From: Oopsacas minuta
Taxonomy: Eukaryota > Animalia > Porifera
Length of the DNA stretch: 64,000 nucleotides
Assembly: GCA_024704765.1 (NCBI GenBank)
Contig: JAKMXF010000312.1
Span: forward strand, 346,181-410,180
Direction of reading: 5' to 3'
Numbering within the stretch: the first letter of the stretch is position 1; every line of letters starts with the position of its first letter. Shown here piece by piece: positions 3,101 through 60,778 of this stretch. The notes under the pieces were generated by a model. The model had not been told where the DNA came from, searched no databases, and saw only the letters and a list, made by a program, of their open reading frames with translations. The position numbers and the translations under genes are program-made.

Positions 3101-6100
3101 TAATTTTAGAGTTTTCAAGATTTTGGCATAGATTTTGCCTGGATTTTGTATGAACCCTTCAAGTGTATAGCGTGAACTTCGAAGGCTCATCATTTGGCTA
3201 CACTAATATATAATTACCTCTTATATCCAAGTTTACGCCTCCTAATACAGTAGCAGGGCTCATTCTGTAAAAGCATCTCAGTACAAAATCTCCACTACCT
3301 ACAACACTGAACACTTCATCCAAACTAACAGGATTCCCAAACTCAGGAGAGTATATTCTATCTTCAGATGTGAGTACTCTTTCTGGTGTCCAGCGTATTG
3401 AACTATCTGCAATGGTAGAGTCAATATTTTCATAGTATAACATTGTAGGAGACCCTGCTGTATATCCTATCTCTATTGTGCTATTAAAGTCATCGAGTGT
3501 AACTGAAATATGAAATATAAAAAGCCAATTTTCTAAAGTTTGCATTTTCACTTACTTATGGTAGAAGTAGGGTCTAAAATGAAAATGTTATGAGAAATTG
3601 ATCCATCAATAACGCATGCGTATTGCCCAGGTTCTTCAGCAGAAATTTCGAGTATACTGAATCCTGTTGTTGAGTTAAAATCCGCACTTGATGTTTTACT
3701 GATGACATGATCACTACCTACAATACTATACAACCATTCAATGTTGGAAGTGCTGTTGTCTGTTGCACACACTATTGATACACTGGTTGATGGCTGAATT
3801 GCTGTACCATTGGATAATGGTGTTATCTCGTTTAAGCCTTCAATTCTGCCAATATTTGTGCCTATAACAGGATTATTAACTTGAATTCAGCGTTGCTATA
3901 ATATGAAGAATTTTGGTTTTGACATGAACATTGCAGAAACTATGAACTTAGGGCATGAACCTTTGGCATAGACTTTAAGTTGGCAACACTTAATTTTAAC
4001 TTTTAGCTGTGTAAAGGGCACCTTCTTAAAATGTTATACAAATATATCAACACAAATCATTACAGTATAAATACCTTGTGTGAAAACTGAAATCTTGAGT
4101 ACCACCTCCTCTTGGCTTGATTCCCAAAATTTTACAGAAAATTGAACATCTCCATTATGCTGTAGTGACATTATAGGAATATTCAAATCGGTTCCTATTT
4201 CATATCCTCCTAGAGATTGACTCCAGCTTCCGAACAGAAGATTACTTTGTATTACTACATTTTGTGCGTAAGTAGGTATCTGTATTATGGTATTACCATA
4301 GGGTTGTCCGAAGTATTGTGGGTCAGCTCCATCGTAAAATACAGCAAGATTTGCCTCACCTAAATATTGTAAAAAGTATATAATTATAGTTATTTAAGGC
4401 CTAGTATAGTATACTATTGGTAAGGTAAATTGTCCAGAGACATAATTTTCGGGAAGAAGGCACTCTGAACTTTACTTTGCAATTTTGGGCACAATAAACT
4501 GATTTGTACTTTTTGAGATTTGTCCATGCAAAGTGATTGGACCTTGCTGGCATAAAGTCTTACCCTGGATGTTTAATGTTGCTTGAATTCTGATGTCAGA
4601 CTTAATTGTTACATAACAATATATTTCCATGATACTTGGCAGTTCAATATTCACAAGTGACCTAACTGTAACAGGATTTGGATGGGGGGAACCTCCGATT
4701 AGCCAAGATACATTTCTCAGGTTGATAGTTGTATCCATGGGGTCACAATGTAGTTGTATTCCATCACTGTCTATACCCACTGTATAATTGTAAGTGTTTC
4801 CCCCAGTAACAGCTAAATGTATATGATTAGATATTCCACTTATATACAGTCGAATTCGGCTTTTTACTCGTGCGTTTTGTGGGGTAAAAACTCGATTTAG
4901 ACTGTATAACAATAAACTCTAGAATACTTACCAGTTGTTGCTGTTGGGCTACGAGTAAATACACCCATATAATATGTGACTTGAATACCATCCATTGTTA
5001 TTTCACAATTATAATATCCTTCTAAATCTAATGTAGCTTTGAATTTACCAATACCATACAAAGTTGTAGCAGTAAGGCCTTGCACATTTTTACTAAATGT
5101 TGTTTGATGCCCCCAGTAAACAAGGGAACCCGGTTCAGATGTACAAACTAGCCAAGTGTCAGCGTAGAAAATTGAGTTGATAGGCTGCACTGTATATTGC
5201 CCTGAGGAAGTTTCTATCGCAACAGGACTACCTATAGGAATAGAAAATAACAAACTGTGAAACGCAATAGGAAGTCAAAGATTTATGCAAACCTGTTTGA
5301 GAAATATCTATAGCGAATATTTCCTTCACTTCACCATTCCAAGTTTGATTCGTGTTGAAACTGTATCTTCCAGGTGATTCCAATGTAAATAATTGAATTA
5401 TTGCAGTGTTATTTGGTATAAAGGGGTAAATAGGAATTGTCCATGTACCAGACTCTATATTCGTTATAAGTGTGACGTCAGTTGAATAGAGTGGAATTGT
5501 TATAGAGATTGGATCAGGGCTTACAGTACCGTAATTTGTAGTATCAAATCCAGTGTAACTTAGCATGAGCATAGGATCTATTACAAATGTTCAAATCAAA
5601 AGATAGAATTTTTAGGCATTTAATAACTAACCATATATAGTAATCTGTACTGAAAATGTTGCTACACTTTCCATATAGCAGGTTAAATTCAAACTAGCCG
5701 CTATATTATTGATAACAACAGGATTGTTGTAGGTTGAATTTGTTGTTGTATCTCTCCATGTTATTGTGTTGAGGTTGATTGAGGTATTTTCTTGATCACA
5801 TAATAACTGTATGTCATTTTGGTCAATACCTTTGATATAGTAGTAAGACATCCCAGCAGTTGCAACTAGATAAGTTAGACATTGTATTAGTAATTTTGAA
5901 AATTGAAGCTGCAGAATTATCAAGCAATAGAATGGGAGTATTGTATTGTCAAAATTGAATCTTTTTTCAAATTTTAAGCGACAAAAATGGTGTAAAACTA
6001 TTTATATTAGAAGAATTATATACCCAAAGTGCACATCTAGACCCAAAACTACATCCTTGTACCAATTTTCATTTAAATTGGACAACTAGATTTCCCAAGA

Positions 6101-7103
6101 CAGCGCCTACGGAGATTTTTGGATTATCACTTCTGGTATTAATAACATACCTGTAGTAACCATAGGATTAAATACAGCTACTGTGTAAGTTACATTCCTC
6201 ACTTTACAGGTATAATACCCCTGTTGTGACGTCATTATTTCGATGCTACTTATTCCTGTAGTTGTATTCCATAATGATGTAGTTTCGTTTTCTGTTGCAT
6301 CTTGATTGGGTTGGTATGTCCATTGTATTTGCTGAGAAGTGTCATTTGTAGCGCATACAAGTGTTGTATTAGTGTGGAATATGTTGTTATCAGATAGTAT
6401 AATGTATTCAGCAGATGCTGTTTGTTCAGCTAGTCTTGTTCCTAATGTGGAAATAGTGAATATTTGTAGTAATTAACATACGTGTAGCATTTTAATGGTG
6501 ATTTCTCGACATATATGAATTTCACCTTTATCCATGGTTCAAAAGTTAAAAATGACTTACAGACTAGCTGTGCTAATACAATTGCATTGCCCAATATACG
6601 TACACCAATTATTTGTGTAACTTTAATAGGAATTTCGCGAAATGATCATCCATATAATTCCGTGGATACTCTTATTTGAAAGCTAACTCACCAACAACAG
6701 AGATACTTATCTGTATCGCTAACACATCACTTCCATTCTTAGAAACATAGAACCTGTACAGCCCACCGTGATTAGCTGCGAATACTGGAATTGCAAATGT
6801 ACTATCTGTAATATTGGTATTATCTGGAGCTTGCCATTTCCCTGTGACGTTAGTTTCTAAAGTAACATTAAGTGTTAATACTGTAATATCAGCTGTGTTA
6901 ACTTCAGGCGGGAGAAGAGCATGAGTCTCAATCGTAGTGTGAGATAGAGTAATAACTGGTGACCCTATAAGGAAATAATAGATATTAAATATGTCTATTT
7001 GTAAGTGTTTGCTATAGTTACCTTCTGCAGTTGACTGATGTATTAAAACTGCGAACAAAACAAGCAAATATCCACAAAAATGGTGCATAATCAATGAACG
7101 CAT
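108..7103 (-). CDS. Receptor-type protein tyrosine phosphatase 'RPTP-A': signal peptide, 10 Ig-like exons, FN3, TM, active D1 + D2
   Basis: Hand-spliced exons (descending): 7103-7022 signal peptide MRSLIMHHFCGYLLVLFAVLIHQSTAEG; 6964-6692; 6441-6151; 5865-5632; 5577-5293; 5231-4932; 4812-4564; 4359-4075; 3861-3556; 3502-3218; 3079-2774 (each a multiple of 3, phase 1); 2539-237 (FN3, TM LIVVAVVVILLLTLGILMVLLTLLIWL, D1 with WPDHDVP, HCSAGVGRTG, QTFRQY; D2 HCIDGIGKSG); probable last exon 176-108 with in-frame TAA at 171-173. Confidence 0.88.
2577..2721. mobile_element. MITE family M1 copy (Tc1/mariner-like TA|CAGTGTAACCTCC termini), degenerate, in RPTP-A intron
   Basis: Left end tactgtgtaccgtacaaaacggg, internal cagggacgccgaaaatgct shared with other M1 copies, right end gaggttacattgta. 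Confidence 0.65.
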
Positions 7104-7910: not shown

Positions 7911-10900
7911 ATGAGAACAGAATATTTATTTATTTTGATAGTATTTGTGCTGCAGATATTGTCAGTTATTGGACAAGGTAATTAATATATGTGAATTTAT
8001 TGGGTATTGCTTATAAGAACACTGGTTATCTAATATAGGAACCATCCTCTTGAAAACGGTTATGAGAACATATATTGCTACTCCTAAGGGTGTTCTTATA
8101 AGCAATAACCATTGTGTATACTATTAGCAGTTAAATCCGTACTCATTTTGCTGAGTACACAAGTATAAATCGAAAATTCCTTATTTATAATATATAGAAG
8201 GGAGGTTATTTAATTATTTTCGTAAGAGTTTTGATGGGATTTATGATTTCTTAATTTTCTAGACACTCAAATAACAATATCAACCACAACCACCCCTTAC
8301 ACAAACTTACCTCCTGAAAGCAACACTGCAGAAATTCTTATACTATCTCTGAATGTTACTTTAGAAGCTAATATAACAGGGATGTGGGAGAGACCTGGCA
8401 AAACATATAGTCACGATAAATCAATCAATTTTGATGTTTTCACTGTCGACTTAGCTGGTTCGTACAAATTTTATGCTGATGGAATCAGGACTGTATCGAT
8501 ACAGATTGACATTTCTGCTACAGGTAAATATTGTATATATTACGTCTGTAGGTAAGCACTTCAGTAAATATTGTGGAATCCGCCTATTAGCAACCGTTTT
8601 CATCGACATGGCCATAAAGTGATGGTTTGTATGGTAATTTGTGTGTATAATAGCCTAATTGTTTAATAATAGAACAGAACTCACAGGAAAAGTATTGGCT
8701 ATACAACTAGATATATCTGTCGATCACGGTTGAAGATTTATGATCGTAATGAAGAGAAACACAAATAAGTTATTACTTCGTTTTCTGTATTTCCGACAAT
8801 TTCGATATTTTCACACCTTGATGACGTCATAAAATCACACATTTTGCAGACTGTATTCGGTTGAACTAATGTATATTGAAAAAAGTTTTGATATACAACA
8901 TTTCCTCCAGGTAGTAACTTTGCTGAAATGACGTCATCTGGAGTATACACAATATTATCTGATAACAATGTGTTCTATAATGACAGAACACTAGTATGTG
9001 CGACTAGTGACACTAGTACAGAGCCAGAATGGAGTCGAAATGGAGCAGTGATCACTGGAACCTGGGATGATGTAACAGGAATAAGTACACTAGACATAAC
9101 TATATCACAACAAGGATATTATACATGTACTCCTGTATCAGGGACAAGTTATACTGTAGCTATATTCAATCCTGATATTACTATAAGTGAGTTGTATTAA
9201 AGATGAATCTTTTTAGCATTTGGAAATTGTCAATGTTGTTCTTACTTTCTTTATAATATACACTTTCTTGTGTTTAGTTGCACAAGGCGGAGTTACTTAC
9301 TATTACACTAAAGATATAGATCCCTCTAATATACAGCTCTTGTGTACTACAACTGATCTTACTAAGGCATTGGAGAGTATAGATTGGACTATTCCTGGGC
9401 AAACTAATAGAAATCCTGTTCTTCTCGAAGAACTCCCAAATTCCATCACTCAATTGAACTGTTCTGCAGGGCTAGTAACTGCCAAACTTAGAATACAAGG
9501 TAAATTGGCATATGTTACTGGTCCTGATTTTCTATATAGCATAAGCGTAAGATCCAATTCACAACTCCTACCCATCCAAAGAGAGGCTATTCATATGTAT
9601 TTATAGATATAGGTAGGCCACTTCCTAGGGGGCCCAAAGCATCATTTCTCCATTTTCTGCCTATTATAGAAAATGCTATACATAGATCACTGACTCAATT
9701 TACCGATACCTACTTATTTCTCTATCCCATTAGGACCGCCTGTAATAACACTATCCACTACGCCAGATATAACATATTCTATGTTACCTACTGCATCAGA
9801 GGCTAATAATGCTGATATCATGGCCTTGTCTAAGAATGTTACGCTGGGAATTAACCTCGTAGGAGAATGGAAATTTCCTAACGGTTCTAGGAGCCAATCC
9901 AACCCTTTAGTATTAGAATTATTTACAGCTAATCTAGCTGGAGTATATGAATTCTATATAACAGATTGGAATGGTGTAGATATACTAGCAATACAGATAA
10001 CATTATCTGCTATGCGTGAGTGTGTTCTATGTGATATTTAACTGTAGAAGGATCCAATGTATTTATATGTTTATCTTGTATAGCTTATTTTGCGGAGTTG
10101 TCACAGGGAGAATACACACTATTATCTGGTAACAATGTGTTCTATCATGACACGACGCTAGTATGTGGGAGTAGTGACACTAGTACAAAGCCAGAATGGC
10201 GTCGAGATAGAGAAGTGATCACTGGAATCTGGGATCCTATAACGGGAATAAGTACACTAGACATTACTACATCACAACAAGGATATTATACATGTACTCC
10301 TGCATCAGGGACAAGTTATACTGTAGCTATATTCAATCCTGATATTACTATAAGTGAGTTGTAATTCATATTATATATTATAAAGTGAATTTTGTAGATA
10401 GTGTTGTTGTTACCATTTTTATCATGTATCTGTTCTAATGTTTAGTTGCAAAAGACGAAGGAATTTACTTTTATACTCAAGATGTAGATCCGATAGATAT
10501 ACAGCTATTGTGTACTACAACTGACTTCTCTATAGCACTGAACAATATAAAATGGATGAATGGTGGAACAATGTATAATAATCCTGCTATTCTTAATGAT
10601 ATCCAAAATACATTCACTACATTGACTTGCAATACAGGAAATATACAAGTAAACCTGATGTTACAAGGTAACTACAATTATACACAAGTCTGTCTATCAT
10701 TATTACTTATATGAGTTATATCGTAATTTACTACTTAAATATGATACTTTCCATTAGGACCTCCAATTCTCACGGTAAGTTATCCAAGTTTGACTACTCC
10801 CTACTCAACATCTGTCAGCAGCACATATAGCATCACAATCTTAACACAGGACGTTACTATAACTAGTAACCTGATGGGAACATGGCAATCAGTTGTCAGT

Positions 10901-13900
10901 TCTCCTGCAAGTAACATAGCTATCCAAGTTGGAACATTTACTAAAGACAAGGCTGGTTTATACAGTGTATATGTTACACCTTGGGATGGAACATCTGATA
11001 TACCCGCTATACAATTGGATATTTCCGCAATAGGTAGAGTTGATATGTTTGGAATTATTCTCAAATCTGTGCACTTTTCCATACAAATGCCTCCCTAATT
11101 AACGTAGTATACTGTGTGTTCATATTTTCTTCTCTTTAGGTAATAACTTCGCTGAAATGACGTCATCTGGAGTATACAACTTCCTTACTGGGTTTGAAGT
11201 GTTCTATGTTGATACTACATTAATTTGTGCTACAAGTGATTCAACTGAACCTCAATGGAGTTATATAGGAATTCCAAGTGGTAACAATACACCATCAGGC
11301 GTATGGAATTCTGATACAGGGCTAAGTACATTGAATATACAAACAACAGCACAAGGATATTATAAATGTAATAAAGGAGCACTCTTCTCGGCATCTATAT
11401 TTGATCCTAGTATTACAACTGGTAAGATAGAAATAGAAATGTGTATTTCTATAATGAATATTTGAACATATTCATGTGTATTTAGTTGTGAAGCAAGGAG
11501 AAGTATACACATACTCATATACTAAGGGAGTAGATTCTTCAGATATACAACTGTTTTGTACAACTAGTATTAACAGAGCATTCCCTAACATGAAATGGGG
11601 TTCATTTGGGAATCCTGTAATTCTCAATAATGTACCAAACCAAGAGTTTGATACATTTGATTGTACATTTGGACCCATTGGCATACTAAGTATCGATCTA
11701 TTAGTACAAGGTGAGTACATTTATACGTAATTTCCTTCCAATACACTTTGAATGCATTATTCCAAAATTTATTTCAATAGGACCACCTGTAATAACACTA
11801 TCCACTGCACCAGATACAACATATTCTATGTTACCTACTGCATCAGATAACAATAGGGCAAATATACCAGTGTTATCTGAGAATGTTATGCTGCAAACTA
11901 ATCTCTTAGGAAGATGGCTAAAACCTGATGGATCTTCTACTGATGGAAACTTTATAGAATTCATACTATTCACTGTAGATCTTGTTGGTATTTATCAGTT
12001 TAATGTAACAAATTGGGAAAACCAGGAAGAAAAGGCAATACTGATCAATATTTCTGCAGTTGGTAAGATATATTTATATACAGTTGAACTCGGAAAACAA
12101 AATTAGCATATACTAACCGATGGATGTCTTATCCGAATATTATTCCTATACAATTCATACAATATTTGATAATCCGCTTTGGAGAAAAGTACGTACAAAT
12201 CGAGTTCTAGTGTATTTCCTTATATTATAGGTACCAACATTGGAATGGATTCAAATTCCACTATTACAACAATTTATATGGTATATTCTAGGTACTGCAT
12301 TTATAACCATGACACAAAACGACTCTCAGATTATTTATCAAGAACTGAATAATAATTCAATAATAAATATGACAGGGAATGCATCCTTAGCTTGTGCTAC
12401 GTCACATATACCAGCGGAGGAAAATGATATAGAATGGTTCTATCAAAAAACAAGCATAGCAGATCCGGGAGCAATAAGAGGGGATTATAATCTAACAATT
12501 GGGCTGAATGTATTGGTTACTGACCAACCTGGATTTTACAGATGCGAAGTGTCAAACGAAAATCGTGAAAAGTTCATATATTTTGTAGGAATAGTGCCCA
12601 CTTCTGATGATATTCAATCAAGTGAGTGATTTACAAGCATTGATTGCATTTACAAATTGTGAAAATTAGGTCTGCACAGGATGTAATTTCAGTGTTTAAG
12701 CTACTATCATTGTATTTATCCTCATTTAGTTGGCAGAGATGATCTAGAGACTGCTAAAACAATTGATTATATCTTAGGAGAACCTCTAATGTTGTATTAT
12801 TATGATGTAAATATACCTATAACCGCAATTCGCTGGGGTGTTGAAGTTGGGTCAACTGAATTAGAAGAATTTCTGAATCCAGTAGATGTCAATGAGGTGT
12901 TTGCAAAGTTTGGAAGCGGTGCGTACAAGTTCCGTTGTTTCTATAGACAGAGTCCTATTACTAATGTTGGAAATATATCACTAAATATGAAAGGTAAAAT
13001 TCAATGCATTTTCTATTACACGTGTCATAACACACTAATTTTCAAATATTTCACTAGATAATGCTTCTTTGATGGTTGAGAGTGACGCAATATGACAATA
13101 TTCAATGATAGTGGAAATAAAATTTTCCGATCCGGAAAGAATAGACATTGAGATTGTCTCTAAGAATGTGCTAATTTCCTGCAGTTTAAGTCCGTGTGGG
13201 ACAAATTGAAAAAGATGGAAATCTTTTAACTACTGAAGAGATAAATATAGTTTCATTGAGGATAGAGAATCAAGGATTATACTCATTGAGGAGAAATACT
13301 AGCGAAGGAGTTGAATATACTACTGCTGCCTTCAATCTAATTGTTACAGGTATTTGCCAATTGTTGCAAATTATCTATTGAATTAATGCGTTTGAAACTG
13401 CCTCAACAAAACATTATTGCGAATTTTAATAATTCATTGCCTAAAATTTTGTGAATCTAACGTCGATATAACCATCCTATTTGCAAGTATACATAATATT
13501 GTGACACCTTATCATATTGTAGTCATCTATGAATGTTCTATAAGTATAACTAATCTAATATATTATTTAGGCTATATAGAACAGAACATAATAAATCTGA
13601 CCCCAAGGTATATAAATGATACTTCTATCCAAATATCATGGCAATTACTAATATCCTTACCTGACAACGCAGAGGAAACATTCACCGTTACATATCAAAC
13701 ACTAAATGGCGTAATACAAACAGCTGGAATAACAACAGAACTAAACTATAACTTAACTGATCTCATCCCCGGTCAAACCTATACAATTTGGGTTGAATTG
13801 TCGTATACATACACTTTTATGTCGCCAAAACTTTCAATTGAAGTTACCATCCCCGCACTGGATTTCCCACTGATATATGTCGTAATTGTTGTCATTTTAA

Positions 13901-19528: not shown

Positions 19529-21054
19529 ATGTCGGATACAGCAGAACCAATTCCCAAACCTATTCCTTCACCTCTTTCATCTCCAGACAGTGATACAGAG
19601 CTCCCGGTAGAGATGTCTCCTCCTCCTCCTACTGAATATTCTACTGACCCTATATGGTCTGACGTTATACCGATACCACAACATGAAGGACCATTTCCGG
19701 TTGTCAGGATTGCATACACGAAGGTAATAATAATTTCTCCTAGTTATGAATTCAATGGTAATCTGACTTAATATATTATTCTGTATAGGAATTCAAAGAA
19801 GTACACGATTACCTCCGTGCTATGCTTAAAACCAATGAACAGAGCGATAGAGCTCTATCACTCACTGAACATGCTGTAACACTAAACCCAGCTAATTACA
19901 CTACATGGCAATATAGGAGAGTGTTATTGAAGGCTATGGGATGTGATTTGGAGAAGGAATTGGATTTTATTGCTAGTGTTATTGGGAAACACCCTAAGAA
20001 CTATCAGGTGATTTATTTGTTTGTTTGTTTTCCAGTTTGTTTATTTCATTGGTTGCTTGTTTGCTACAGGTATGGTACCATAGACAGAAGCTAACTGAAT
20101 GGATTGGATCTCCAGGAAAAGAATTCGAATTCACTGCTGATTGTCTAGAAGATGATACTAAGAACTACCATGTATGGCAGTACAGACAATGGCTATTAGA
20201 GAAATTCCCTAGTTACTACAAGGCTGAATTGGAATTTGTTGATACTCTGATTAAAAATGACGTCAGGAATAATTCTGCTTGGAATCAGAGATATTTTGTT
20301 CTAACTAAAATGAGTGAATTTACAGTAGAACTAGTCAGGAAAGAGGTATGCTATTATGACGGAAATAGGTTATTAGTTATGTGACCATGGATGGTGGATT
20401 TATTTCATCTGCTTGGACGTTGTTCTACGTCATTTTGAGGAACTCCTAGCTTGATTGGGCGGGGAAATTGTACAGTCAACTCCCGTTATGTCAAACATAG
20501 ATATACCGAAGTCTTATATTGTACAAATATGGTTCCAAACCGTCAAAGTAGCATATATTATATCGGTTATATCAAAGCAATTATTGAGGTCCCTTGAGCT
20601 TCGATATAACAGGAGCTAACTGTATATAACATATATCCACCATCCATGGTTAATATCCAATAATCTTTTAGCCGGGAGTTTTAATATTTGAATTATACAG
20701 ATTGAGTATACAAAACTTTGTATCCGGTTATCACTACATAATGAGAGTCCTTGGAATTATATGAGAGGTATCCTGAATTGCCAAGATTTGAGTTTATATC
20801 TTGAAGTTAAGATCTGGATTCTGCAAACAATCGCGAAAAGAAAACCGTCAATATACGCGTATAGTATTCTAATTGATATATGTGAAATGGAGATTGAAGA
20901 GGGAGGTCCTGAAATGTGTCAAAATGCCTTGACAGAAGCTCTGAGTTACTGCCAAATCCTGGGAGAAGATATGGATGTTATACGTAAGAATTATTGGGCT
21001 TATACTGCAGACAGATTGAAAAATTTATTCACAGTTATCCATGGTGTAAAGTGA
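19529..21054 (+). CDS. FNTA: Protein farnesyltransferase/geranylgeranyltransferase-I alpha subunit
   Basis: join(19529-19723,19789-20007,20070-20345,20701-21054); PFTA repeats NPANYTTWQYRR, KNYQVWYHR, KNYHVWQYRQW, DVRNNSAWNQRYF, NESPWNYMRG. Confidence 0.95.
20367..20665. mobile_element. Foldback family M3 (arms ...ttaaccatggatggtggattt / aaatccaccatccatggttaa...) with nested M2 MITE (20471-20624)
   Basis: Left arm gtgaccatggatggtggattt (~20381), right arm atccaccatccatggttaatatccaataa (~20635); inner element tacagtcaactcccgtt...aacaggagctaactgta. Confidence 0.75.
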
Positions 21055-37517: not shown

Positions 37518-40500
37518 TTAGTAGTTCTTTGGCTTAGGTGGAAGCTCTGGTTTAGTGATTAAATACGGAGATACGAGGTTGGATGTGTTCTTAACGTAAG
37601 CTACGTTATTTGTAAATGTTATATCAGGTTCATAGTCATCTAAGGTGTTTACTGTCTCCTCGCATGAACCTGTTTGTGTTTTGTGTTTAGATGATTCTCC
37701 TGATGAAATTAAGCTCTTTGTTTTACGTATTTCTATAGGGGTGATGTCTAGGTCCAGGAAATCTACACAACTGTATCTGTAGATAGAAACGGAAATTTGT
37801 AAAAGGGATGGTGAGTATCAAATTTGTGTAGAATTGATTGCGGTACTGTAAGAGCATGATATACCCTGTGGAGGTCATAGTGAGGACAAACGGGGCAATT
37901 ACCACAGATTTGAAAACCATGGCTCCTATATTGCCTCGGACGTATGCTTGACTCATCTCTGAGAGAATGTATTACATATTTTAAGACTTACCTATTGTCT
38001 TGTGGTGCTTGAATATTCGTAACATCCTTGGTATGAGCTATTAGAGTTTTATGTTTGAATGAATCCAATACATTAACAGGGAAATGATCTATGAATGGAT
38101 TTGTAGTAACTTCCTTATTATGTTGTATAGTATTGTATCCATCCTCGTTCTTTGGATAGAAATTAGCTGTGTTTTTACTGTCAGGTACTTCGGAGTAGTC
38201 TATTGGCTGTGTAAACTCTGAATTGTTCTAAATAGAATTTCAATTATTTACATTTTAAAGAAATTCCACCATTAGGATATTAGATATTAAACCATGGATG
38301 GTGGATTTTTGTGTACTAACCTGATGCTTTGTCTTGGGTATAGTATTCCAGTCATCATGTCTAAGTCTACTATATTCTAATTCCACTGAACTTGTTTGGT
38401 AGTTAGGAGTACTGTATATTGTAGCTGATGGTATATCAGGGAGAGGTCTACTGATATTAGGAGATTCAGGTGGTGACGTCATATGATTATTAGGCATGTC
38501 ACCGACTGATGATACACAACTTGAATAGATTGGTAATGGTTGTAGCTTACGTTCAGGGAGTGTTACAGCTGACTAAATGATAAGAAAGAGCTCACCACTG
38601 TAAAACCTCCACAAACGGGGAACTTCTGAAAACGGAGTGAAAAGTATATTGTCCGAATTCCTAGCCTCATACAGATGAATCTCTACCCGTTTAGACAGTT
38701 TCTACCAAAGTCCCGTTTGCGGAGGTTACACTGTATATATCTTACCCTTGGTTGAGCTGATGGTGTCTTAGTTAGCTGTGATTTAGACATTACGAATTGT
38801 TTAACTTTATAATACAGAGGTCTGCATTCATCTCCTTGAAACCTGATCTGTCCGTAACCAGTGAAAGAGCGACTAACAAATACAGATAATAAACCAGGGA
38901 TATACAGGCTTTATTTTGACTAAAATAGGCCCTATATGCTTATTAGATATTTAACCAAGGTTGGCGGATTATGTTATATACAAATCCACCATCCATGGTT
39001 AATTATCTAATAAGCATATAGGATCAGGATTTTCGTAGACTTACTGTCCAGATGTTATAATGAGCTTATCATCATTTGTTAGTTTAAATTCTCGGATATG
39101 AGTTATTAGCCATGTAACCTGAGTTTCTAGCGTTACAGCATGACACAACTTTATATCCTGATTACGTACAATCACTACACACAAGCCTTTAGGTACCAGT
39201 GTTAATGTAGATACTTCTACTTCTACTTTGTACTTGGATACTACTTCCTCAATAATTGCATGAGCTAGAATGGTGATGTGTAGTTATGCAATATCTTAAG
39301 CCAATGGTTACCTTGGGACAATGGACCTCTTGGCCCACGTACGATAGCAAAGGGTCCACATAAAGTGTTAACATTTGTTTAAGGGAAAAAGCCACATAAT
39401 TTGCAATTACTTCCCTGGAATTCTTGTAATAGAGAGATTTAAAGTCTATTTTGTATTGGAAATAATTCCTCAAATAAGTTCGCGTATTTGCAAGGGATTT
39501 TCGTCCAAAATACGACTTTGCTAATAGCCTAACTACACTGTATTATGATTAGAGAGTATATAAATTACTTGGAGAAGATACTGTAGTCTTAACAGTAGGT
39601 TTCCTGTTGTTGTTATGAGGAGGTAAGGGTGGAGCTACAGGCACCTCAGTAGGAGGCTCTGCTCCTATCTTACTTATATCATTCATAGAATTACTCTTTG
39701 TTCTGTTTCTGATTGAGCCAGTTAGTTTCATTGATGTTGTTAGGCTGTTGTCCACTAGATGGTCTATTGATGTAGTTCTGGGGAATAAGCACTCATTCAG
39801 CTCCTATAATGAATGACGTCATCAGAGCGTAATAAAATGGTTACGACGAAAATGGTTGTTATATGATTAATTTTTTTAACCATGGATACATTCAACCCCG
39901 TTATGCCAAATACGGATATATCGAAAATCCAGTTTCGATATGACGGGAGGTGATTGTATACAAATCCACCATCCATGGTTTAAATAACTTCATCATAAAG
40001 TACAAACATTAACTCACTTCAACCCATGATTCTAAGCCGAATTGACTATCACATTCAAACACATATCTACTGCCTGGAGGACAGACAGCAAACATATGTC
40101 TAACTTGTTTATGATTCTGCTGACATATGACAACTGGTGTGACAGTTCCTGTCAAATTGAATGTGTATTTAGGACTGTAACCTGATCGGAATTGAGACTC
40201 GTTAGAGTATGCATCGAATACAATACGGGGTGTACTACCTTCTATCTGTTTGAATACTAACCATACTTTCTTCCAATGCTAAATATACATCAGTTAGTAA
40301 ATATATTGTGTAGTTGTATTTCACTGATTACATGGTGAAAGAATGACAATATTCATACGGCAGGTAAACTTGATGCGGGCAGTGGCGCTGAAACAAATTT
40401 ACAACTAACAGTGGTCTTATTCATGAAAAATACTTACATGGAATACTTTCCTCTCCTGTATACACACATAACCTTGTTTCTTAATCTCATACTGCTCGTC

Positions 40501-40548: not shown

Positions 40549-40898
40549 TATTATAATACTTATTTCTATTAATTACTTGTATTAATATTGCTGATACTGA
40601 CTGTAGATATATTTACATAGTAATTCAATATCTTATATAACGATATAATCAATGACGTCATACAGTATTTATGTCTTATAGCTTATACCAGTGATAATAT
40701 TCTACAGCTAATACATACGTTGATGACGATAGCTTACAAGAAATATTTCCTATATTTATAGCGACTTCCGGTCAGTCATATACTTTCCACCTCCCCCAGA
40801 GGGAACAGCTAGGTCTTATATACAGTTAAAATGATCAGATTGAATGATCTGTTTATATAAGTTTATATGAATAATTCAATGTATAAAGTGTATGTATA

Positions 40899-45374: not shown

Positions 45375-48300
45375 TCAAACACTCTTCAGAGGATCTGTAA
45401 TAGACAGAAACACATCTTCTAATGTTGTCTGTCCAAGAGAGAAATCTGCTATCAAATCTCCTCGTTTCATTTCTATTAGAACTCTAAGCAGAGAAGGTAG
45501 ACACACGTTTTCCAAATGAAAAGTCAAAAGTGTCAAATGAGACTCTAACGGTTTGACAGCTCGTGACAACTTGTTACTAATCTCTTCTATAACAGCTACA
45601 TTATCATGTGAGAGAGATAAATATACCTTCAAGATATATCCCTCCCCGAATTTAGCCTTCAAATGCTGTGGTGATCCAATACACTGTACTCTCCCCTTAT
45701 GTATTATAGCTATACGAGTGCATAAGGCTTCACATTCAGTCATACTGTGTGTAGTTAAAAGAGAAGATACGCCGGTATTTGTGACGTCACGTAATAGTTC
45801 CCATAAGAACTGTTTAGCATATGGATCTACACCGGAAGTAGGTTCATCTAGAAGCAGGAGATTAGGCTCAGATATCAATGCTATTCCTGTTTGAAGCTTC
45901 CTTCTGTTACCGCCTGAGTATTTAGCTGATGGTGTATTAGCGTATTCTTTGAGTTGTAATCTCCTGATAGTGCTGTCTACTGCATTTTTTAACGCGTTGC
46001 CATGGATACCCCTGAGACGTCCGAATAGATATAAATGCTCTCTACCTGTGAGACGATCGAATAAGGAATCGAACTGCGGACAATAACTCATATTTCTATT
46101 TGCTTCCTGTCTGCATTTTGTGACGTCAACACCCTTTACATATATCTTACCGCTACTGAGGGCGCGTATACCTGTAATGCTATCGAATATTGTTGTTTTA
46201 CCGGCACCATTTAGGCCAAGCAAGCCGAAACATTCATTCTTAACTGCAAACGTGACGTTATCTACTGCTGTGAATTTCCGCAGTTTCTTAATAGTGACGT
46301 AGTTCTTTGTTATATTGTGTAGAGATATGGTATTTTCTGAGGTGTTAGAATTCGCGAGTACACGCTCTCTCTCCTCTTCAACATCAGAATCACATACGAT
46401 GTCACGTGGATAGTTCTCATTACAATTGTGTGTGTACTTTGATCGAAAATTTGAGAAGAAAGTTACAGAAATCGTTAATACGAAAACTAATATAAACTCT
46501 ACGTATATTATCAGCAAACATTTCCCTATAGGATCCCATTGGAAAGGATCAGATTTTTGCAGTCCAATAGAAAATCCAACTTCCGCTTGTTCTAGCTCGT
46601 AATAATATGTAGTAATGAGGTGATATAGTATGTACGGGAATGAGAATTGTGGTATGAATACGAACGTGTTTTTAAGCGCAATACTGAAGTTCTTAGAACT
46701 GCTATTATTAGTAATGTCTAATGAGAATATTATTACAAGAGTCATAAGTCCGAATACAAATGTACAGCAAGCCATGACTACATATGCTAGACTTGGGCTC
46801 TTGAATGGACGAGATAATAATTGCAAGGAAGATATGCTGGTTAAGCCAAATCCTAACGCAGCTAATAGGAAAGTAGTTATATGCGTCTTGGATACGAATG
46901 GGTAGTATTGGAATGCACCCATTATAACCATAGACAGCAGCACAGCGACACAATACGTTATGACGTCATAGATAAAGGATACGATCCAGTATACAACTTG
47001 ACTTAACCCAGATAACTCCTGGAGATATCGTGTACCTGATACTTTCTCTTCTAATACGAATACCACTGAGAATGCTACGAGGAATGAAAACCCAAAAAAC
47101 ATCATGAATGATACGAGCATTGGTTTCCCACTTGTTATTTCTGCATAGACCCTCTGGAAGGGGGTCAGAGGCCAGATTTCAGAGTTACCGATTATTCCGT
47201 AACTTGTGAAATTCCGCGAATATCCGAGGTTATCTCTCAATTCACGTCTAAGTATTGCATTGTTCATAACATTAAGTGATGACGTAATAGCTCTAAATCC
47301 CTTGAAAGTGAACCAAGCTTTAGAATAATTCCTAACTCCAAACATATCATTATAATCTGTAGTATTGAATACTGGTATATCTTTCCTGACGTCACCAAAT
47401 GATACACCTTGATAGCGATTCAGTATAAACCTATCAAATGACCTTATAAGGTAATCTGTAACGTTACGGCCTCTTAAATCCTGTAGAGTACTTCCATCAC
47501 CTTGTGACACCATTTCTAATGGATCGGGACCGGAAGCATGGGGAGGGCATGACAACCACCCTGTGTTACAGTTACATGACGTATTATAGGGTGTAGTTTG
47601 GTTCTGTTTAGGAATACTCCATACAGTAGGGCAATAGCTACACTGTATAGAGTTATGTATAATAGATTTGTTATTACGTACACATGGTTGATCAGATACA
47701 ACTCCCAGACCTCCAGGACATGTTATAGTAGATAGATAGCTATCAGCTGATGACTGAACAGCTGGAGAGGATAGGAAGAAGTACTGGGGACTAGACAGAG
47801 ATAAATACATACCAGGGTGATACCTTATTACATCCGGTACCCCACTGACTGTGTATACTACTGTAAGAATCATAGCTAGGAGGATAGCACATAGGAATGG
47901 TATGTATTGGAGCAGTAACCCTCTGACGTCACGGCGTGTGTGATGTATTCTCTTCAGGAATAACGCATAGCTATGTAACAGTAGAAGTTTAAGCTTATTG
48001 ATAAATGAATTGGGTTTAATACGCGTTACTGGCTTGTATGTGTTATCTATAATGACGTCATCATCATGGTCGACTGTGTATCTTAATTCTGTTAGCATTA
48101 AGAACAGCTGTTCTAAGCTCGGAGCTGATAATCCATAGGATAATATGTGTAGTCTATCTCTATTAGATTCTAGCTTGTGTAGAATATCAGGGAGGTTGTA
48201 TCTACTGCTGGTTACACAGGCGTTTGATAGAGGGAATCGTAGCTCTTCTACTGTCTCTTTGACACCATTTATATCTCCGAGTATTTTGTATAACTCCTGT

Positions 48301-51300
48301 CTATGTGTGACGTCATCAAATGTATGTTTCTTCTCTACAGTAAGCAAGTAGTTCAGACCGAAATTAGCCTTTAAGAATGGTACAGCTCCTATACAGAGGA
48401 TATGTCCGTGATCAATCATAGCTATTCTATCTCCGAGTACTTCAGCTTCTTCCATTTGGTGTGTGGATAACAGAATACATCTATTTTGTCGTTCTGATAG
48501 CAAGAAGTCCCATATATGACGTCTGGAAGCTGGATCTACTCCGGCAGTAGGTTCATCTAGGATAACTAGCTTGGGAGAACCAAGGAAGGCCAAAGAGACG
48601 CTGAGCTTCCTTGCCATACCCCCGGATAGATTAACCACACATTTATTCATATGAGGTAACAGCGCCATACATTCCAATAGCCTATTAGAATCACTAGCTA
48701 TCTGGCTAGATGTTAAGCCTCTTAAAGCCCCGTAGAAGTTCATATGTTGCTTAACAGTTAAGTGTGGGAATAGTATATTATGCTGTGGACAGAGTCCTAT
48801 ACTATCTCTACCGTGAGTTATACGGATACTACCAGATGTCTGTTTGTTTATTCCTGATAATATCATCATTAAGCTCGTCTTACCAGCACCGTTATGACCC
48901 AATAACACTGTAATATGACCTTCATACAGATTTAATGATATAGAGTGTAGTGCTACTTTCTTCTTTAAGCCTAGCGCCCCCCATGAGTATACCTTACCCA
49001 GTTGATTGATGGACACACCCTTTGTAAGATGGGTGGGGTCTCTCTCTCTAGCTAGAGGTTCCCAAACTCTAGGGACACTAGCCCGATCGAATGTAACCTC
49101 CTCCATAAGAAGCTCATCACTATCTCCACTTATTTCCTCGTATTCTTTGTTTCTACGTAAATTCTGTACTATTCTAGCCCACCTGTCTTCTCCTAGCCAA
49201 AATGATGGAGTTATCAAGAAGTACCATGGATGTCTACGACCGTAACTCCCAGGCAGTATAGCTTGTATATACAGAGCTAATACAGTGTATAATATAGCGT
49301 CTATACACATACATGACCAGCTGATACCTGGGGTAGAGAATCCTTTATCTAACGGAGAAGTAGCTAGATTATTCCAATGTAATCCTACACCTCGTAGCTC
49401 AAATTGTACTGTATGATACACGAATAGACCTAATGCTGTAGGAGCTAACAGCTGGGATAGCACTATTGTAATAGGAGGTACTCTAAACTCTAATATCTGT
49501 ACCAGAATTACTAAGAAATAAAGCAGGAAGTATACCAGACCTACAGTACTAGCTGCTACTGTAGCTCTCCTGAATGGTAAGCTTAAGAGAATACCTAATG
49601 GTAATAGAGCTAGGTTGTAGCTGAGCTGAGCTAGCAGTAGGATAAGGAACGATGAATACGTTAGAACTAGCTTAAGTATTGCTATAGATAGCAAGGAAGG
49701 AATAGCTAGTAGTATATAGTATACAGCTAGCCAGCTAGCCCAGTGTTCTAATACACCTACTCCTAGTACAGACATGACGTCACGTAATCGCTTCTCCCGC
49801 TCTTGTACTATTGCTCTAGCCAGTAAGGATATTGTTAGAACACTCCCCGCTGTTAGAATAAGTGGGATAGTTATCTGACCGATTAGCAGATTACTGTTGA
49901 AAAGGAAGCAAGGATAGGGAAATGGTTGTAGGTATCCAGCTGGTATATGTGCTGTACTGTTCGTGTATGTGTTAATAAGCGCACGTTCTACAAGATCTTG
50001 TATGAACACATACCCGTATTTGAGATCATTAAGGTCGTAGTCTGAATTCTCAGGACCTGGTTTCCATGATATATCTCTTAGAAGATAAGAACCCATTGAT
50101 GTAGTGAAATTCATTCTTATCTTATAAGAGCTCTGAGGAGGTAGTGTTGTAGCATTAGTAATGTTCTAGAAATATATAATACAGTGTAACAAATGGGGAA
50201 TACAATACAGCTAGAATGGTTATCACTTATAAGAACACACCAGATATAAGAACATATTCCTGTATATTTATATCGGATATAAGAATATGTTTGCTACTCA
50301 TAAGGGTGTTCTTATAAGCGATAAACATAGTCTTTTGCACTGAAAATATGTAACTAACTTGAAATATAATCCCAGCTAATACATATGTAATATTGAGCTC
50401 TCTCTTCCTCTGTGAACTAGTAACAACATCTAGTATACTCTGTTCTGTAGGATAACCTCTAAAGAAATCCCAATTAACTCTAAACACAGCATTAGATAAT
50501 GTATATCTGGTGTATAGCTCCACTGCCTGTGTGTAGCTCCATAGACTGTCTGGACTGTTAATATCTAGTAGAGAGGATGCTTGATTAAGCTGTGAGGATG
50601 ATGGGAGGTTAGGTATAGGATTGACATTCTGTAGCTTAGCCAAGTATCTAGATACAGTGGATACCGGTTATAAGAACCTCATCAGGAGTAGCAGTACATG
50701 TTCTTATAACCGGCATATAATACACAAGGAATATATGAGAACTGTTTCCGAGGATGGTGCTCATATCGGTCGAAGCTCAAGGTACCGCTATTACTTTGAT
50801 ATAAGCGGGTATTTTGATGTGTTCGTGTTAGATATAATGGGAGTTAACTGTACCTTAAATCATTAACTAGAAGCTGCTTAGGATCCGCTATAGAGAAATT
50901 ATATAGAAGAGATCGTAATTGATAATTCTCATCTCTTATCTTGTTAAGAGAGTCCCTAGCTCTGTCTATTAATTCAAATGTGTGATTCATTTCATGTGCT
51001 ATTGATCTGGTTAGTGGAGTATCAGGCGAGAATAATATTCTCACTCCATTCTCTAGCAAACCTAGTATAAAGCCATCATTAATAAGACGTCATATGACAT
51101 CATTTACAGTGTAACCTCCATCAACGGGGTGCCAGGAACGCCGAAAATACTACCTCGTTTCCCTGTTTGTGGAGATTCGTTTGTATGGTATTTCGCTTTA
51201 TTTATACGTCACTCCGTTTCCATGTGTTCCCGGTTTCCACAGACCCGTTTATGGAGGTTACACTATATACCTTGTGTAGTATTGTTATCGCTATTATTCT

Positions 51301-55400: not shown

Positions 55401-56106
55401 TCAATTGATATTATATGTACTAACTACACTATAATCTGACGTCATCAACTCTACAGTAGCACAGTATCCAGCATTTAGGTTGTCCATAGAATTGGTTTTA
55501 AGTCCCATCGCTACTTCTACAGAGTACCAGTGACAGACAGCTATAATAGTGTTATCAGGGTAATCAGCTGTTAGAGCTATAAATGCTTGCTTCATTCTTT
55601 CAGCTGCAGATTCTAATGTCTCTTTATAAGCAGGGTATACTGCTGTAGGAGAGCAGGTGTATCTGCTGGGGTCTATCATGTGAATAAGTGGGTCTATCTG
55701 TTTGTCAAGCCATCTCCATCTATATAATAATAATATAAAGTAATGTAGTAACTCATCATGCAATTAATACATACTTTACTTCTGAGAAGATATACCCGTG
55801 CTCACACAGAATATCTGATAACTGTGGTCTTATTTCTATGTTAGAGATCTGTAGCTGGTCAGCTATGTGACTAGCAGTCTGCATACATCTTATGAAGGGA
55901 GAGCATACTACCTTGATGAAGTCAGAAGAAGGGAGCAATGATTTAATGCGTACCCCTGCTTCTTTAGCTTGCTCGTGTCCTGCTATAGTGAGGGGAGGAT
56001 CGTAGGGGTAGTTAGGGTCCTTCCAATCCTGTGATTTGACAGCGTCTGCTCGTTCTCCATGTCTAAGCACTATTAGACGTCGGTCAGGTACAATGCTAGA
56101 TGCCAT
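55401..56106 (-). CDS. Histidine phosphatase superfamily (PGAM/Sts-like) protein
   Basis: RLIVLRHGER, DPPLT..GHEQA, CSPFIRCMQTA, second His in VCHWYS; two exons. Confidence 0.85.
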
Positions 56107-57791: not shown

Positions 57792-60778
57792 CTATACAGA
57801 CTTTTCTACAAGAAATGACTCTAATAGTTTATACAGATCCTCTCGGGTGCCTTCCTTCCTCAAATGATGATTCTCATTAAAATAAGTGTGCATTCTACTG
57901 GATTGTTTCTCTCGTTTGAGTGAAAGAGACAGCTCTGCAGAGTTCTGGTAGTGTACGTTATCATCAGCTGATCCGTGTATCAGTAACAACTTACTGCCGT
58001 CTATGTTACCGGCACGTAGGAGCAGTGATGAGTCATTATATCTATAAATAGACGTGTTTAATCTCAGTATAAATAATACTCCCAGTATAGCTGAAACGGA
58101 TATATAAAACCCGGTCCCTTAAGAGGGAGTTAATTGCAAATCTTCGTCAATAAATGGATAAAAACATAGATTATGATTAACGAACATTTTCGGTTTATAT
58201 GGAAAATATTCGTGAATATTTTTAGTATTACAAATACGAATTTAAGCCAATAAAACTTGAATTTGTGTGTATTCCTGTGCAGCCATGCTATGACTCACCC
58301 TTGTGGATTATTCTGTGGGGTATTCATGTATCTCTGTGTGTATACTGAATCATAGTATCGCCAGTCAGTTACTGGAGATATTACGATAGCAGCGGATAGC
58401 GAGTTATCCTTTTCAGATGACGTCATGCCGCTTAGATAACCACCATAAGATGACCCCATTATACTGACAGAACGGACCCAGGATTGAGATAAGAGATAGT
58501 TGGATAGACTAGCTTGATCTCTTGCTTCTAGAACGCCAAGTCTGTTCTTTACTGCAAATCTAATTCATAGAGATTAAGAAATTCGGAGTTGCAATTGTAT
58601 CGCTTATAAGAACATACTAAGCTACTCCCAAGTTTGTTCATAAAAGCTAAAATTACTTTTCATAATTTCGAAGTACCTGAAATCTTGTCCTCTGCAACAA
58701 GTACCACTCCCTTCTACTGTAATAACTACAAATCCCAAAGAGCTGACCAGATGAGCTATGAATCCAGAAAATGGGTAGAGAGGATGGGAGAGAGAAGCTA
58801 GATTAGAGTTAGGACCCCCGTACACATACAGGAGAACTGGATATGAATTGGAGAAATCGAAATCTTTGGGTATCATTTTTGTACCGTAAAAACTCTGAGA
58901 TTTATCTTTAAACTCATAAGGCTTTACTACAGGCAGAGAATATGTAGATAGAGTTCTTTCTAGAGCTGTGTTGTTATGTAATACAAGTAGTAGCTTCAGA
59001 GAATAGTCCAATAAGATAGAGAAAGGTGTGTCAGGTCCCAAACAGTTCAATAGGAAATAGCGAGCTATAAATCATACAATAATTATACTGTAATGTAATG
59101 TATTATGATTAATATACTTACAATCTTGACTGAAGGAAGTAGAAACAACTTCACAATCTCTATTCTCTAACTCTGTGTTAGTCAGCTGATTACTAACATC
59201 ACAACTTACACAAATCACTTGAGTTATGTCTGTCAGTGAAACTAAGTATAGATGTGTCTTATAACTGTACTCAGCTGTTGTATAGAATACTAACTCAGAG
59301 TTATAAACAGCTGTAATTGATCTAACTTCATTACCACTAGTGACAGATGTTACTACTCCATTACTATATGATTATATATATATAAGTACAGCAAACTAAA
59401 ATGTTAATATATTAACCTACCTAATCTTGACTATCTGTGTGTATGCATCCTGCGGTAACAGAGTGATTACGTCACCATTTGATAGGAAGTAAGGAGCTAG
59501 TATGCTAGCTTCTACCCACCCTTCTGTTTGGTATGTGTGTACTGTAGATACTAGAGTACATGTAGTGTCATAGAGGGATAACGTCATATCAGTTTGTAGT
59601 CTGTTAAGGAATCTGACAGATACGTGTGTAGTATCCTTCCAATCTACTCCTTGTATGTAATGGTATCCAGTGGGCATTGGTATCTAATACAAATAGTATT
59701 AACTAATATACTATGTATTATATATATACTTACAGAGCATGTAGTACTGTTAGTTGTATCTACTAGCATTAACTTAACAGTACTCTCTGTATCTCCAGAC
59801 TTAGGATAAGGTATTAGAGTATAGGAAGGATAAGGACCTATCTCTGCCCCATACTCTATTATAGTAGCTTCAGGCACTCCGGTAGTATTGAATACAAGGA
59901 ATGCTAGTACAGGATCTGTGACGTCAGAGGGATATACACATGATCCCGTAGAGAGTATTTCCTCTTCATACACCCAGTCAGGAAAACCTGCTATCTCTCC
60001 TAAATTATTTGAGTAGAGAATAATGATGTCAGGAATCTGGCTAGTTGTGACGTCACTGATGAAGTACATCTATAAACAAGAGCAAAAGTTTATAAGCACA
60101 ATGTAACCACCATAAACGAGGAAACATGGTAGCATTGTCGGACCCGTGTGTGTAGCATATACTGAATATGAAATTACTTACAGCTGACTGGTTAGCTAAC
60201 ACCAGCTGATCAGTATGTGTCCATTTGACTACTCTCCATTGACTCCCAGGTATAATATAGTTATTCATAGAGCTGAGTTGTAGAATAGAATAATCAGCTG
60301 TATATGAATATCTGTATAGCTTGTTAGAATTATGAGCTAGCAATAAGTATGATTGAGATGGTGATATGAACCAATAGTCTATCTCTAGCTCTTCCCAGAA
60401 AGTAGCATTCACTAGCACACTCGTGGTGTTATCTATAGGATGTATATAAATGTGTATAGAGGTTGGATGTCTAAGCAAATTACCTGTAACATTCAATAGC
60501 TCTAATCCGTTAGGAGAGATAGAAATCAGCTGATCGTCAGAGGCCCAGCTACCAGAGAACAGCTGTGCATGGAATGAAGTATTGAGGATATCTTGTAAGG
60601 ATATGGGAGTACCTAGGTCATTGGGTTTCAATAAGAAATGTACTAATACACCGATACCTACAGCAATCAAGCAGACTACTAGCACTATTAACAACACACA
60701 CACGAATATTATAAGGAGTTTGCAACTATTATTCTTGTCCTTCTTCTTCTGTTGCATAAAAGGTGAATGTTCTTCCAT
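57792..60778 (-). CDS. Dipeptidyl peptidase IV family (S9B) type II membrane protease
   Basis: N-terminal TM; propeller motifs KLYRYS, GFPDWVYEEEI, YPKSGD; YPVLLYVYGGP; catalytic GSSYGG (~58440-58457), HGSADDNVH, ENHHL; about 7-8 exons. Confidence 0.92.
58598..58640. mobile_element. M4 MITE remnant in DPP4 intron
   Basis: atcgcttataagaacatactaagctactcccaagtttgttcataaaagc. Confidence 0.5.

Follow-up and report, generated by a model that had tools for sequence, protein, structure and literature searches.

Results

An iterated palindrome in glass-sponge genes

The stretch analysed here, hereafter the window, is 64 kb of the genome of the glass sponge Oopsacas minuta (Hexactinellida; contig JAKMXF010000312.1, positions 346,181 to 410,180 of the forward strand), with long open reading frames (ORFs) for tandem receptor tyrosine phosphatases, a RAVE/Rav1 (DMXL-like) protein, an ABCA transporter, a TAF5-like WD40 protein, Rap/Ras GTPases and a kinase. 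The protein encoded by the ABCA ORF matches one of O. minuta at 100% identity. Spread across the window are 26 copies of an eight-letter DNA palindrome, TGACGTCA (Table 1). A first-pass annotation of the same DNA, made from the sequence alone, had listed 26 start positions, every one of which proved exact on recount, and had called the word a hyper-iterated palindrome like the cyanobacterial HIP1; the label holds, the word being an exact palindromic octamer that exceeds composition-aware nulls at least 15-fold. Against the 26 copies observed, 100 dinucleotide-preserving shuffles of the window gave a mean of 0.59 and a maximum of 3, while order-2 and order-3 Markov models predict 0.35 and 1.18, so that the excess ranges from 22- to 75-fold across the nulls. 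The excess itself is thereby confirmed; the earlier estimate had been more than 30-fold, at about 0.7 expected copies.

The GACGTC hexamer occurs 31 times in the window, and 26 of these 31 copies lie within the full TGACGTCA. One-mismatch variants of the octamer are near expectation, as is the AP-1 heptamer, and TGACG and CGTCA half-sites outside the octamer (35 and 26, against 22–33 and 21–27 expected) are not enriched. Since neither the one-mismatch neighbours nor the half-sites depart from expectation, the enriched unit is the exact full palindrome.

Orthologous, syntenic ABCA loci were taken from seven other assemblies, together with one paralogous locus, L007 (all among L001 to L010), and about 275 kb of glass-sponge sequence was examined in total. 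Pooled over seven loci (the window, L001, L003 to L006 and L007), TGACGTCA occurs 62 times against 1.4 expected and reaches z = 51 among palindromic octamers, with the next-ranked at about 8 or less. Other palindromes are thus not comparably enriched, which leaves the template-switching mechanism proposed in the first-pass annotation unsupported.

The hosts of L001 to L010 are presumably glass sponges (Hexactinellida), judging from their 58–78% ABCA identity and conserved synteny. L001 (78% amino-acid identity to O. minuta) has 17 TGACGTCA sites in 23.5 kb, and its close relatives L008, L009 and L010 have 13, 8 and 9; L003, L004 and L005 (69–71% identity) have 6, 6 and 5, and L006 (59% identity) has 2. 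With only 0.13–0.30 sites expected per related locus, the excess is not limited to the window, and the density in O. minuta and its relatives (0.2–0.7 per kb) is about 45 times expectation. Eight contigs (63 kb) of the demosponge Geodia barretti, used as a control, contain one TGACGTCA against 0.66 expected. No copy is present in the 24.5 kb of L007, a paralogous, transposon-rich ABCA locus from the same assembly as L003. Spacing between sites is Poisson-like, with a coefficient of variation of about 1, and neither regular spacing nor clustering was found in loci of 24–64 kb.

L007 and the L005 flanks are AT-richer and carry MULE/FLYWCH and integrase ORFs, with no TGACGTCA in 24.5 kb and one in about 20 kb, respectively; in the same or sister assemblies, syntenic loci that are dense in genes reach 6 per 25 kb. 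This scarcity in transposon-rich DNA could mean that the word marks old host genes, or that it needs time to accumulate.

That the copies are an assembly artefact or the debris of a decayed repeat family is a reading to which we give practically no weight. Flanking sequence is unrelated from site to site, with the single exception of a paralogous pair of phosphatase (PTP) exons, at 8929 and 11158, which is all that speaks for common descent, and the same excess is found in independent assemblies from different projects and technologies as well as in Logan contigs. Sites 24275 and 27946 abut, without overlapping it, a dispersed repeat of about 40 bp; the dispersed repeats adjoin the motif but do not contain it, and the first-pass annotation had likewise placed the sites outside its miniature inverted-repeat transposable elements (MITEs). 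An origin of TGACGTCA from a repeat family or MITE is effectively excluded, as no flanking sequence is held in common beyond the PTP paralogues.

Table 1. Copies of TGACGTCA and of a second palindrome, ATCAGCTGAT, in window coordinates. Exon status was judged from ORFs, by length.
Site	Frame	ORF or gene	Remarks
TGACGTCA 5473..5480	Asp-Val	minus-strand ORF 5231-5590 (120 aa)	
TGACGTCA 6227..6234	Thr-Ser	minus-strand ORF 6110-6472 (121 aa)	
TGACGTCA 8822..8829		minus-strand ORF 8741-8974 (78 aa)	coding status uncertain
TGACGTCA 8929..8936	Thr-Ser	plus-strand ORF 8892-9197	paralogous exon copy of 11158 site
TGACGTCA 11158..11165	Thr-Ser	plus-strand ORF 11103-11462	paralogue of 8929 site
TGACGTCA 20258..20265	Asp-Val	plus-strand ORF 19998-20381	
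TGACGTCA 24275..24282		outside ORFs of at least 60 aa	just upstream of ORF 24311-27775; adjoins dispersed repeat
TGACGTCA 27946..27953		ORF 27807-28037 (77 aa)	coding status uncertain; adjoins dispersed repeat
TGACGTCA 30001..30008	Thr-Ser	RAVE/Rav1 (DMXL-like) ORF 29583-33767	
TGACGTCA 30509..30516	Asp-Val	RAVE/Rav1 ORF 29583-33767	
TGACGTCA 34670..34677	Thr-Ser	ORF 33823-35094	
TGACGTCA 38474..38481	Thr-Ser	minus-strand ORF 38258-38572	
TGACGTCA 39814..39821		60-aa ORF only	probably non-coding
TGACGTCA 40653..40660		45-aa ORF only	probably non-coding
TGACGTCA 45782..45789	Asp-Val	ABCA	O. minuta-specific, via Glu>Asp; Glu in all six other species/paralogues
TGACGTCA 46121..46128	Asp-Val	ABCA	O. 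minuta-specific; L001 has GACGTC core without flanking T/A
TGACGTCA 46961..46968	Asp-Val	ABCA	position common to L001, L008, L005
TGACGTCA 47387..47394	Asp-Val	ABCA	O. minuta-specific, His>Asp (CAC>GAC); His kept in five other orthologues
TGACGTCA 47924..47931	Asp-Val	ABCA	common to L001, L008; decayed in L009 to TGACATGA
TGACGTCA 48053..48060	Asp-Val	ABCA	common to L001, L008, L009
TGACGTCA 48308..48315	Asp-Val	ABCA	common to L001, L008, L003; decayed in L009 to TGATGTCA
TGACGTCA 49775..49782	Asp-Val	ABCA	common to L001, L008, L009, L004, L005
TGACGTCA 55437..55444	Thr-Ser	minus-strand ORF 55404-55763	same position as L001:5372
TGACGTCA 58418..58425	Thr-Ser	minus-strand ORF 58298-58564	matches L001:2525, L003:145
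TGACGTCA 59919..59926	Asp-Val	minus-strand ORF 59647-60069	O. minuta-specific; relatives Glu-Ala, not Asp-Val
TGACGTCA 60048..60055	Asp-Val	minus-strand ORF 59647-60069	L001 has one-mismatch TGACGTAA
ATCAGCTGAT 29888, 47742, 52350, 54412, 57963, 60525			

A DNA-level word that overrides codon preference

ORFs of 75 aa or more take in 23 of the 26 sites, and those of 100 aa or more take in 20, so that the earlier count of 21 inside coding exons was about right. The stress that it laid on coding exons was misleading, however. When the window is pooled with eight related loci, ORFs of 100 aa or more hold 62 copies of TGACGTCA where 1.29 are expected, a 48-fold enrichment; in DNA that lies outside every ORF of 60 aa or more the enrichment is 42-fold, with 10 copies where 0.24 are expected. 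Because the fold enrichment is alike in the two, we regard the word as a DNA-level feature, and its coding placement is for the most part a consequence of the large share that ORFs take up in this compact genome.

Where the word does fall in coding sequence, it overrides codon choice. A synonymous-codon shuffle within each of eight long ORFs (6,888 codons), which keeps the protein sequence and codon usage, gave a mean of 0.36 and a maximum of 4 copies in 2,000 trials, against 11 observed. As the first-pass annotation had said, the word occurs in both stop-free frames; it does so on either strand, with 14 Asp-Val and 12 Thr-Ser occurrences in ORFs of 75 aa or more. The codons needed are indeed uncommon (GAC is 22% of Asp, GTC 14% of Val and ACG 12% of Thr codons). 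The pair GAC GTC encodes 9 of 33 Asp-Val pairs in the long ORFs, with about one expected, and all nine are within full motifs. In ORFs of at least 75 aa, the contexts that would accept the word without a change of protein are filled in 14 of 34 cases for Asp-Val and 12 of 40 for Thr-Ser, where codon usage predicts about 1%. The ABCA ORF (45378-50165, minus strand) has eight sites, the number that had been given for its terminal exon, all in the frame nnT GAC GTC Ann, and its permissive Asp-Val contexts are filled in 8 of 9 cases in O. minuta and 6 of 7 in L001. The excess survives codon- and dinucleotide-preserving nulls, extends beyond the window and does not trace to a decayed repeat.

The protein itself is affected. 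The ABCA protein has 10–12 Asp-Val dipeptides in motif-rich species and 6–7 in the others, with about 4.5 expected and 3–6 of the reverse dipeptide; the DNA word thus shapes the protein.

A symmetric 10-bp element and its candidate reader

In 124 half-sites, the base preceding the octamer (position -1) is A in 73, G in 33, C in 16 and T in 2. The exclusion of T is not a coding effect, because the Asp-Val frame puts this base at the second position of the preceding codon, where T would be common (Phe, Leu, Ile and Val codons). The recognised unit is a symmetric 10-mer, (A/G)TGACGTCA(T/C), matching the optimal homodimer site of ATF/CREB bZIP proteins. The earlier identification of the octamer as the CREB/ATF cAMP response element (CRE) is therefore borne out, both by the TGACGTCA core and by the mostly purine -1 and pyrimidine +1 positions. 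One form of the element, ATGACGTCAT, is present ten times in the window; it is the palindromic form of the Schizosaccharomyces pombe M26 site and has been suggested as a target of the Atf1 homodimer (PMC2396409). An exact 8-bp palindrome with a symmetric flank preference points to a dimeric reader of double-stranded DNA, and from the sequence match an ATF/CREB-class bZIP would be the best candidate. Most TGACGTCA sites lie deep in ORFs, without the promoter-proximal placement and functional half-sites of a CRE.

Gain, retention and loss of sites

Sites are kept across saturated synonymous divergence. In a codon alignment of ABCA, some are common to 3–5 of 6 species, and motif sites are still in common between O. 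minuta and L003–L005, for which identity at four-fold sites is 0.27–0.31 against 0.26 at random. O. minuta and L001 hold in common 5 of 8 and 5 of 7 of their ABCA motifs, respectively, compared with 8–14% of 8-mers of the same gene (P about 0.001–0.002). L001 and L008, which are about 14% diverged, share 12 of 15 and 12 of 13 motifs over the whole loci, non-coding DNA included, compared with 35% of 8-mers.

The element spreads by point substitution and not by transposition, and the directional force makes sites from sequences one or two steps away even where an amino acid is replaced, as at 45782, 47387 and 59919 (Table 1) and by an Asn-to-Asp change in the L003–L005 group. Many gains came about through non-CpG changes, for example CAC>GAC and GAG>GAC. 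O. minuta has itself lost, through a Met-to-Ile replacement, one site that five others keep.

Maintenance can also lapse. L009 and L010 retain sites at background only (7 of 15 and 6 of 13), from which it follows that maintenance is lineage-dependent. At least three ancestral sites, with O. minuta as the outgroup, were lost in this lineage, all three at the central CpG, and relative to L001 and L008 about half of ancestral TGACGTCA sites have gone at the background rate, mostly by CpG>TpG or CpA, which suggests that the central CpG, once unprotected, is prone to mutate. The L009 and L010 loci, both from one sample and 1.2–1.4% apart, are probably two haplotypes.

Run X5, labelled as a different organism, contains contigs that match the ABCA region of O. 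minuta (45300-50200; 4,901 letters compared) at about 96.7% identity, and its source is a close relative or a divergent population. None of the 40 differences listed (124 more exist) falls in the eight ABCA motifs, but with about two hits expected by chance this says nothing about motif retention.

A second iterated palindrome

Alongside TGACGTCA, a second palindrome with an E-box CAGCTG core, ATCAGCTGAT, is iterated. It occurs 6 times in the window against 0.15 expected, and 3–4 times in each of L001, L008 and L009 against 0.05–0.07 expected; the enrichment is 40- to 80-fold in O. minuta, L001, L008 and L009 and is absent from L003–L006 and Geodia. There are 23 ATCAGCTG/CAGCTGAT sites in all. 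The flanks of ATCAGCTGAT copies are unrelated, several reading frames are used, and at least one O. minuta copy was gained through an amino-acid change. L009 keeps ATCAGCTG at full density while losing its TGACGTCA CRE sites. ATCAGCTGAT may be akin to the AP-4 bHLH-ZIP site. With two unrelated dimer-site palindromes, a process that reads transcription-factor sites fits better than one dedicated repair enzyme.

Discussion

A directional force acts on these genomes: it works at the level of DNA, is distributed over the clade and has an effect on proteins. If it stands in mutation-selection balance, its scaled strength would be roughly ln(45), about 4. On balance, the sequence patterns probably reflect a genome-wide code of optimal transcription-factor homodimer palindromes, with ATGACGTCAT as the main word and ATCAGCTGAT added in one subclade, that runs through gene bodies and is kept up firmly enough to reshape proteins. 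As to the nature of the force, the reading that we put first, tentatively, is that dispersed bZIP-dimer sites are kept across host genes by weak selection for occupancy. A bZIP dimer would bind double-stranded DNA at (A/G)TGACGTCA(T/C), natural selection for occupancy would be the directional force, and occupancy would mark or maintain a chromatin or transcription state across host genes rather than serve a classical promoter CRE. The force would depend on a trans-acting factor able to weaken, as it may have done in the L009/L010 lineage, where background retention, with most losses at the central CpG, suggests such dependence.

Several points weigh against selection for occupancy. Classical CREs are promoter-proximal, sparse and often half-sites, and they act near promoters, a pattern that differs from the one seen here. 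Occupancy of permissive contexts is uneven among neighbouring genes, at 8 of 9 in ABCA, 1 of 5 in RAVE and none of 4 in ORF 24311-27775, and the spacing over loci of 24–64 kb reveals no ruler or architectural period. The near-saturation of permissive ABCA sites resembles drive as much as selection. Finally, the weak sites to be selected would number in the tens of thousands, which calls for a large effective population size.

The main rival of selection is biased repair or conversion, that is, a molecular drive without organismal function in which mismatch repair directed by sequence, or else biased gene conversion, would turn near-cognate sequences into the motif and restore mutated copies, perhaps in concert with protein occupancy of the perfect palindrome, in the manner of GC-biased gene conversion or bacterial very-short-patch (VSP) repair. 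We think this somewhat unlikely, though it would explain a good deal: the permissive ABCA sites are nearly saturated in both O. minuta and L001, a conserved His was replaced, as would fit a force indifferent to protein fitness, the word is as strongly enriched outside ORFs as inside them, spacing is Poisson-like, and one lineage decays at the background rate as if an enzyme had been lost. However, VSP-type repair depletes its substrate words, and no one-mismatch neighbour of TGACGTCA is depleted (ratios 0.3–2.2, on counts of 1–9). A drive would also need a second specificity for the unrelated ATCAGCTGAT in the same subclade, and it sits poorly with occupancy that differs strongly among adjacent genes and with the absence of sites from the paralogous, transposon-rich L007. 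We know of no eukaryotic repair activity of this kind. A VSP-like bias in particular is unsupported, since the deficit that it predicts in the T:G-mismatch neighbour TGATGTCA/TGACATCA is absent, this word being found 9 times against 5.9 expected (1.5-fold).

The remaining explanations seem to us improbable in varying degree. Were the motif merely a mutational sink, arising neutrally and persisting because a bound factor shields it from CpG methylation and deamination or from mutation generally, the CpG>TpG or CpA losses after maintenance lapsed in L009/L010 and the CpG depletion of the window, with its TpG/CpA excess, would be expected, and an absorbing-state process would fit both the saturation in old conserved genes and the scarcity in transposon-rich DNA. 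But at a CpG observed/expected ratio of 0.65 overall (0.5–0.93 in ORFs), full protection would yield about 1.5-fold and not 45-fold enrichment, the motif accounts for only 2% of all CpGs, and many gains were transversions that involved no CpG; the shielding from methylation suggested in the first-pass annotation is therefore insufficient, and we hold a sink to be improbable. Transcription-factor binding usually raises local mutation rates, and we know of no case in which protein-bound DNA has a 45-fold lower total mutation rate. We consider it just as improbable that TGACGTCA is recognised by a system that modifies or processes DNA, as HIP1 is by its cognate orphan methyltransferases, or by a dimeric reader other than bZIP. 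HIP1 is likewise an exact palindromic octamer: it exceeds expectation 15- to 300-fold, is conserved both inside ORFs and between them, and has no known function (PMC5861425); the GACGTC core, too, resembles type II restriction-modification sites. Against this, the 10-mer with its flanks equals the ATF/CREB optimum. An RNA-level element, with UGACGUCA in pre-mRNA or mRNA bound by an RNA-binding protein as, for instance, a splicing or stability signal, is very improbable. Most sites are in transcribed, mostly coding DNA and a palindrome gives the same RNA word from either strand, but RNA recognition offers no reason for a perfect 8-nt palindrome whose symmetric flanks extend it to 10 nt, eight sites lie deep inside one 4.7-kb ORF far from splice sites, fold enrichment is equal outside ORFs, and the flank composition of TGACGTCA sites holds no fixed-distance splice signal.

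Whatever the force, HIP1 (GCGATCGC) is the closest known phenomenon. Both are exact palindromic octamers in tens- to hundreds-fold excess within and between ORFs, with positions conserved beyond background and a clade-wide distribution of lineage-variable abundance. They differ in that TGACGTCA is found in an animal nuclear genome rather than a bacterial chromosome and is a eukaryotic transcription-factor site, whereas HIP1 is a methyltransferase site; no cognate methyltransferase of TGACGTCA is known. HIP1 is reported to be periodic at 10–90 kb; no periodicity of TGACGTCA was seen at 1–60 kb, in loci too short for such periods. With the ATF-CREB CRE and the S. pombe M26 site (ATGACGTCAT) the element has an identical core and the same preferred flanks in common, but unlike the classical CRE it is enriched as the full palindrome only, with a density of about 0.4 per kb and mostly inside gene bodies, and unlike M26-type hotspots, whose motifs should erode by conversion, it accumulates. 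The uptake signal sequences (USS) and DNA uptake sequences (DUS) of Haemophilus and Neisseria are also short words at about 1 per kb that reach into coding sequence and alter codon and amino-acid choice, yet they are non-palindromic and are explained by uptake bias and recombination in competent bacteria; we know of no analogous uptake route in an animal germ line. The CCWGG excess and CTWGG deficit that VSP repair leaves in Escherichia coli offer a parallel in the symmetric word, the methylatable C and a possible repair-driven enrichment, but the deficit of a T:G-derived neighbour is absent here and the magnitude is far larger. Exonic transcription-factor sites (duons) and the periodic A/T clusters (PATCs) of Caenorhabditis elegans are likewise DNA-level signals in gene bodies that constrain sequence choice, and PATCs are linked to the protection of germline genes from silencing. 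The effects of duons are subtle and disputed, however, and PATCs are intronic and degenerate, whereas TGACGTCA is a single, exact and dominant word that changes amino acids.

The two glass-sponge genome papers do not mention the TGACGTCA excess, and full-text searches found neither this excess described for a sponge nor an iterated palindrome described for any eukaryote; we thus found no account of a dispersed iterated palindrome of this kind in an animal. Across a whole clade, a canonical animal transcription-factor site is here about 45-fold over-represented, overriding codon preference, to the point that Asp-Val dipeptides in a conserved ABCA transporter are more than double expectation and a conserved histidine has been replaced. 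If the homodimer-palindrome code is real, it would be the first animal counterpart of bacterial iterated words such as HIP1 and USS. Either bZIP and bHLH dimers would read it as a chromatin or self-marking system, or it would be a molecular drive of a new kind, coupled to occupancy. Selection would imply a genome-wide ATF/CREB-type role in an early-branching, syncytial animal and an extreme natural case of a regulatory code embedded in coding sequence; drive would imply that eukaryotes have a mutational or repair bias of a new sort, which can fix changes in proteins. The motif-losing L009/L010 lineage is a natural experiment that may lead to the responsible factor, and the X5 relative could be used to polarise recent gains and losses of the motif. 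In practical terms, codon, dipeptide and conservation statistics from glass-sponge genomes carry a distortion that comes from the motif.

Other features of the window

At 228-18398 lies a cluster of three ORFs for receptor-type tyrosine phosphatases, which have tandem PTP domains and, in one case, an fn3 domain; paralogous short ORFs, presumably exons, lie upstream of phosphatases at 6110-6472, 8892-9197, around 10100 and at 11103-11462. A dispersed short element with ends of about ...AAATCCACCATCCATGGTTAA... is found in both orientations at about 20384, 20643, 21949, 24227, 28022, 38291, 38992, 39972, 43031 and 43139; it is probably the MITE family of the earlier annotation, and the CRE sites are outside it. 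ORF 24311-27775 contains, on the plus strand at 26688-27150, a tandem array of at least eight copies of a 51-bp (17-aa) unit, which explains part of a ACCATGGA/CCATGG excess, and ends in RanBP-type zinc fingers. A further palindrome, TTCGCGAA, is modestly over-represented, with 11 copies observed against 1.9 expected in the pooled loci, and lies at 6634, 17406, 31863 and 33114 of the window.

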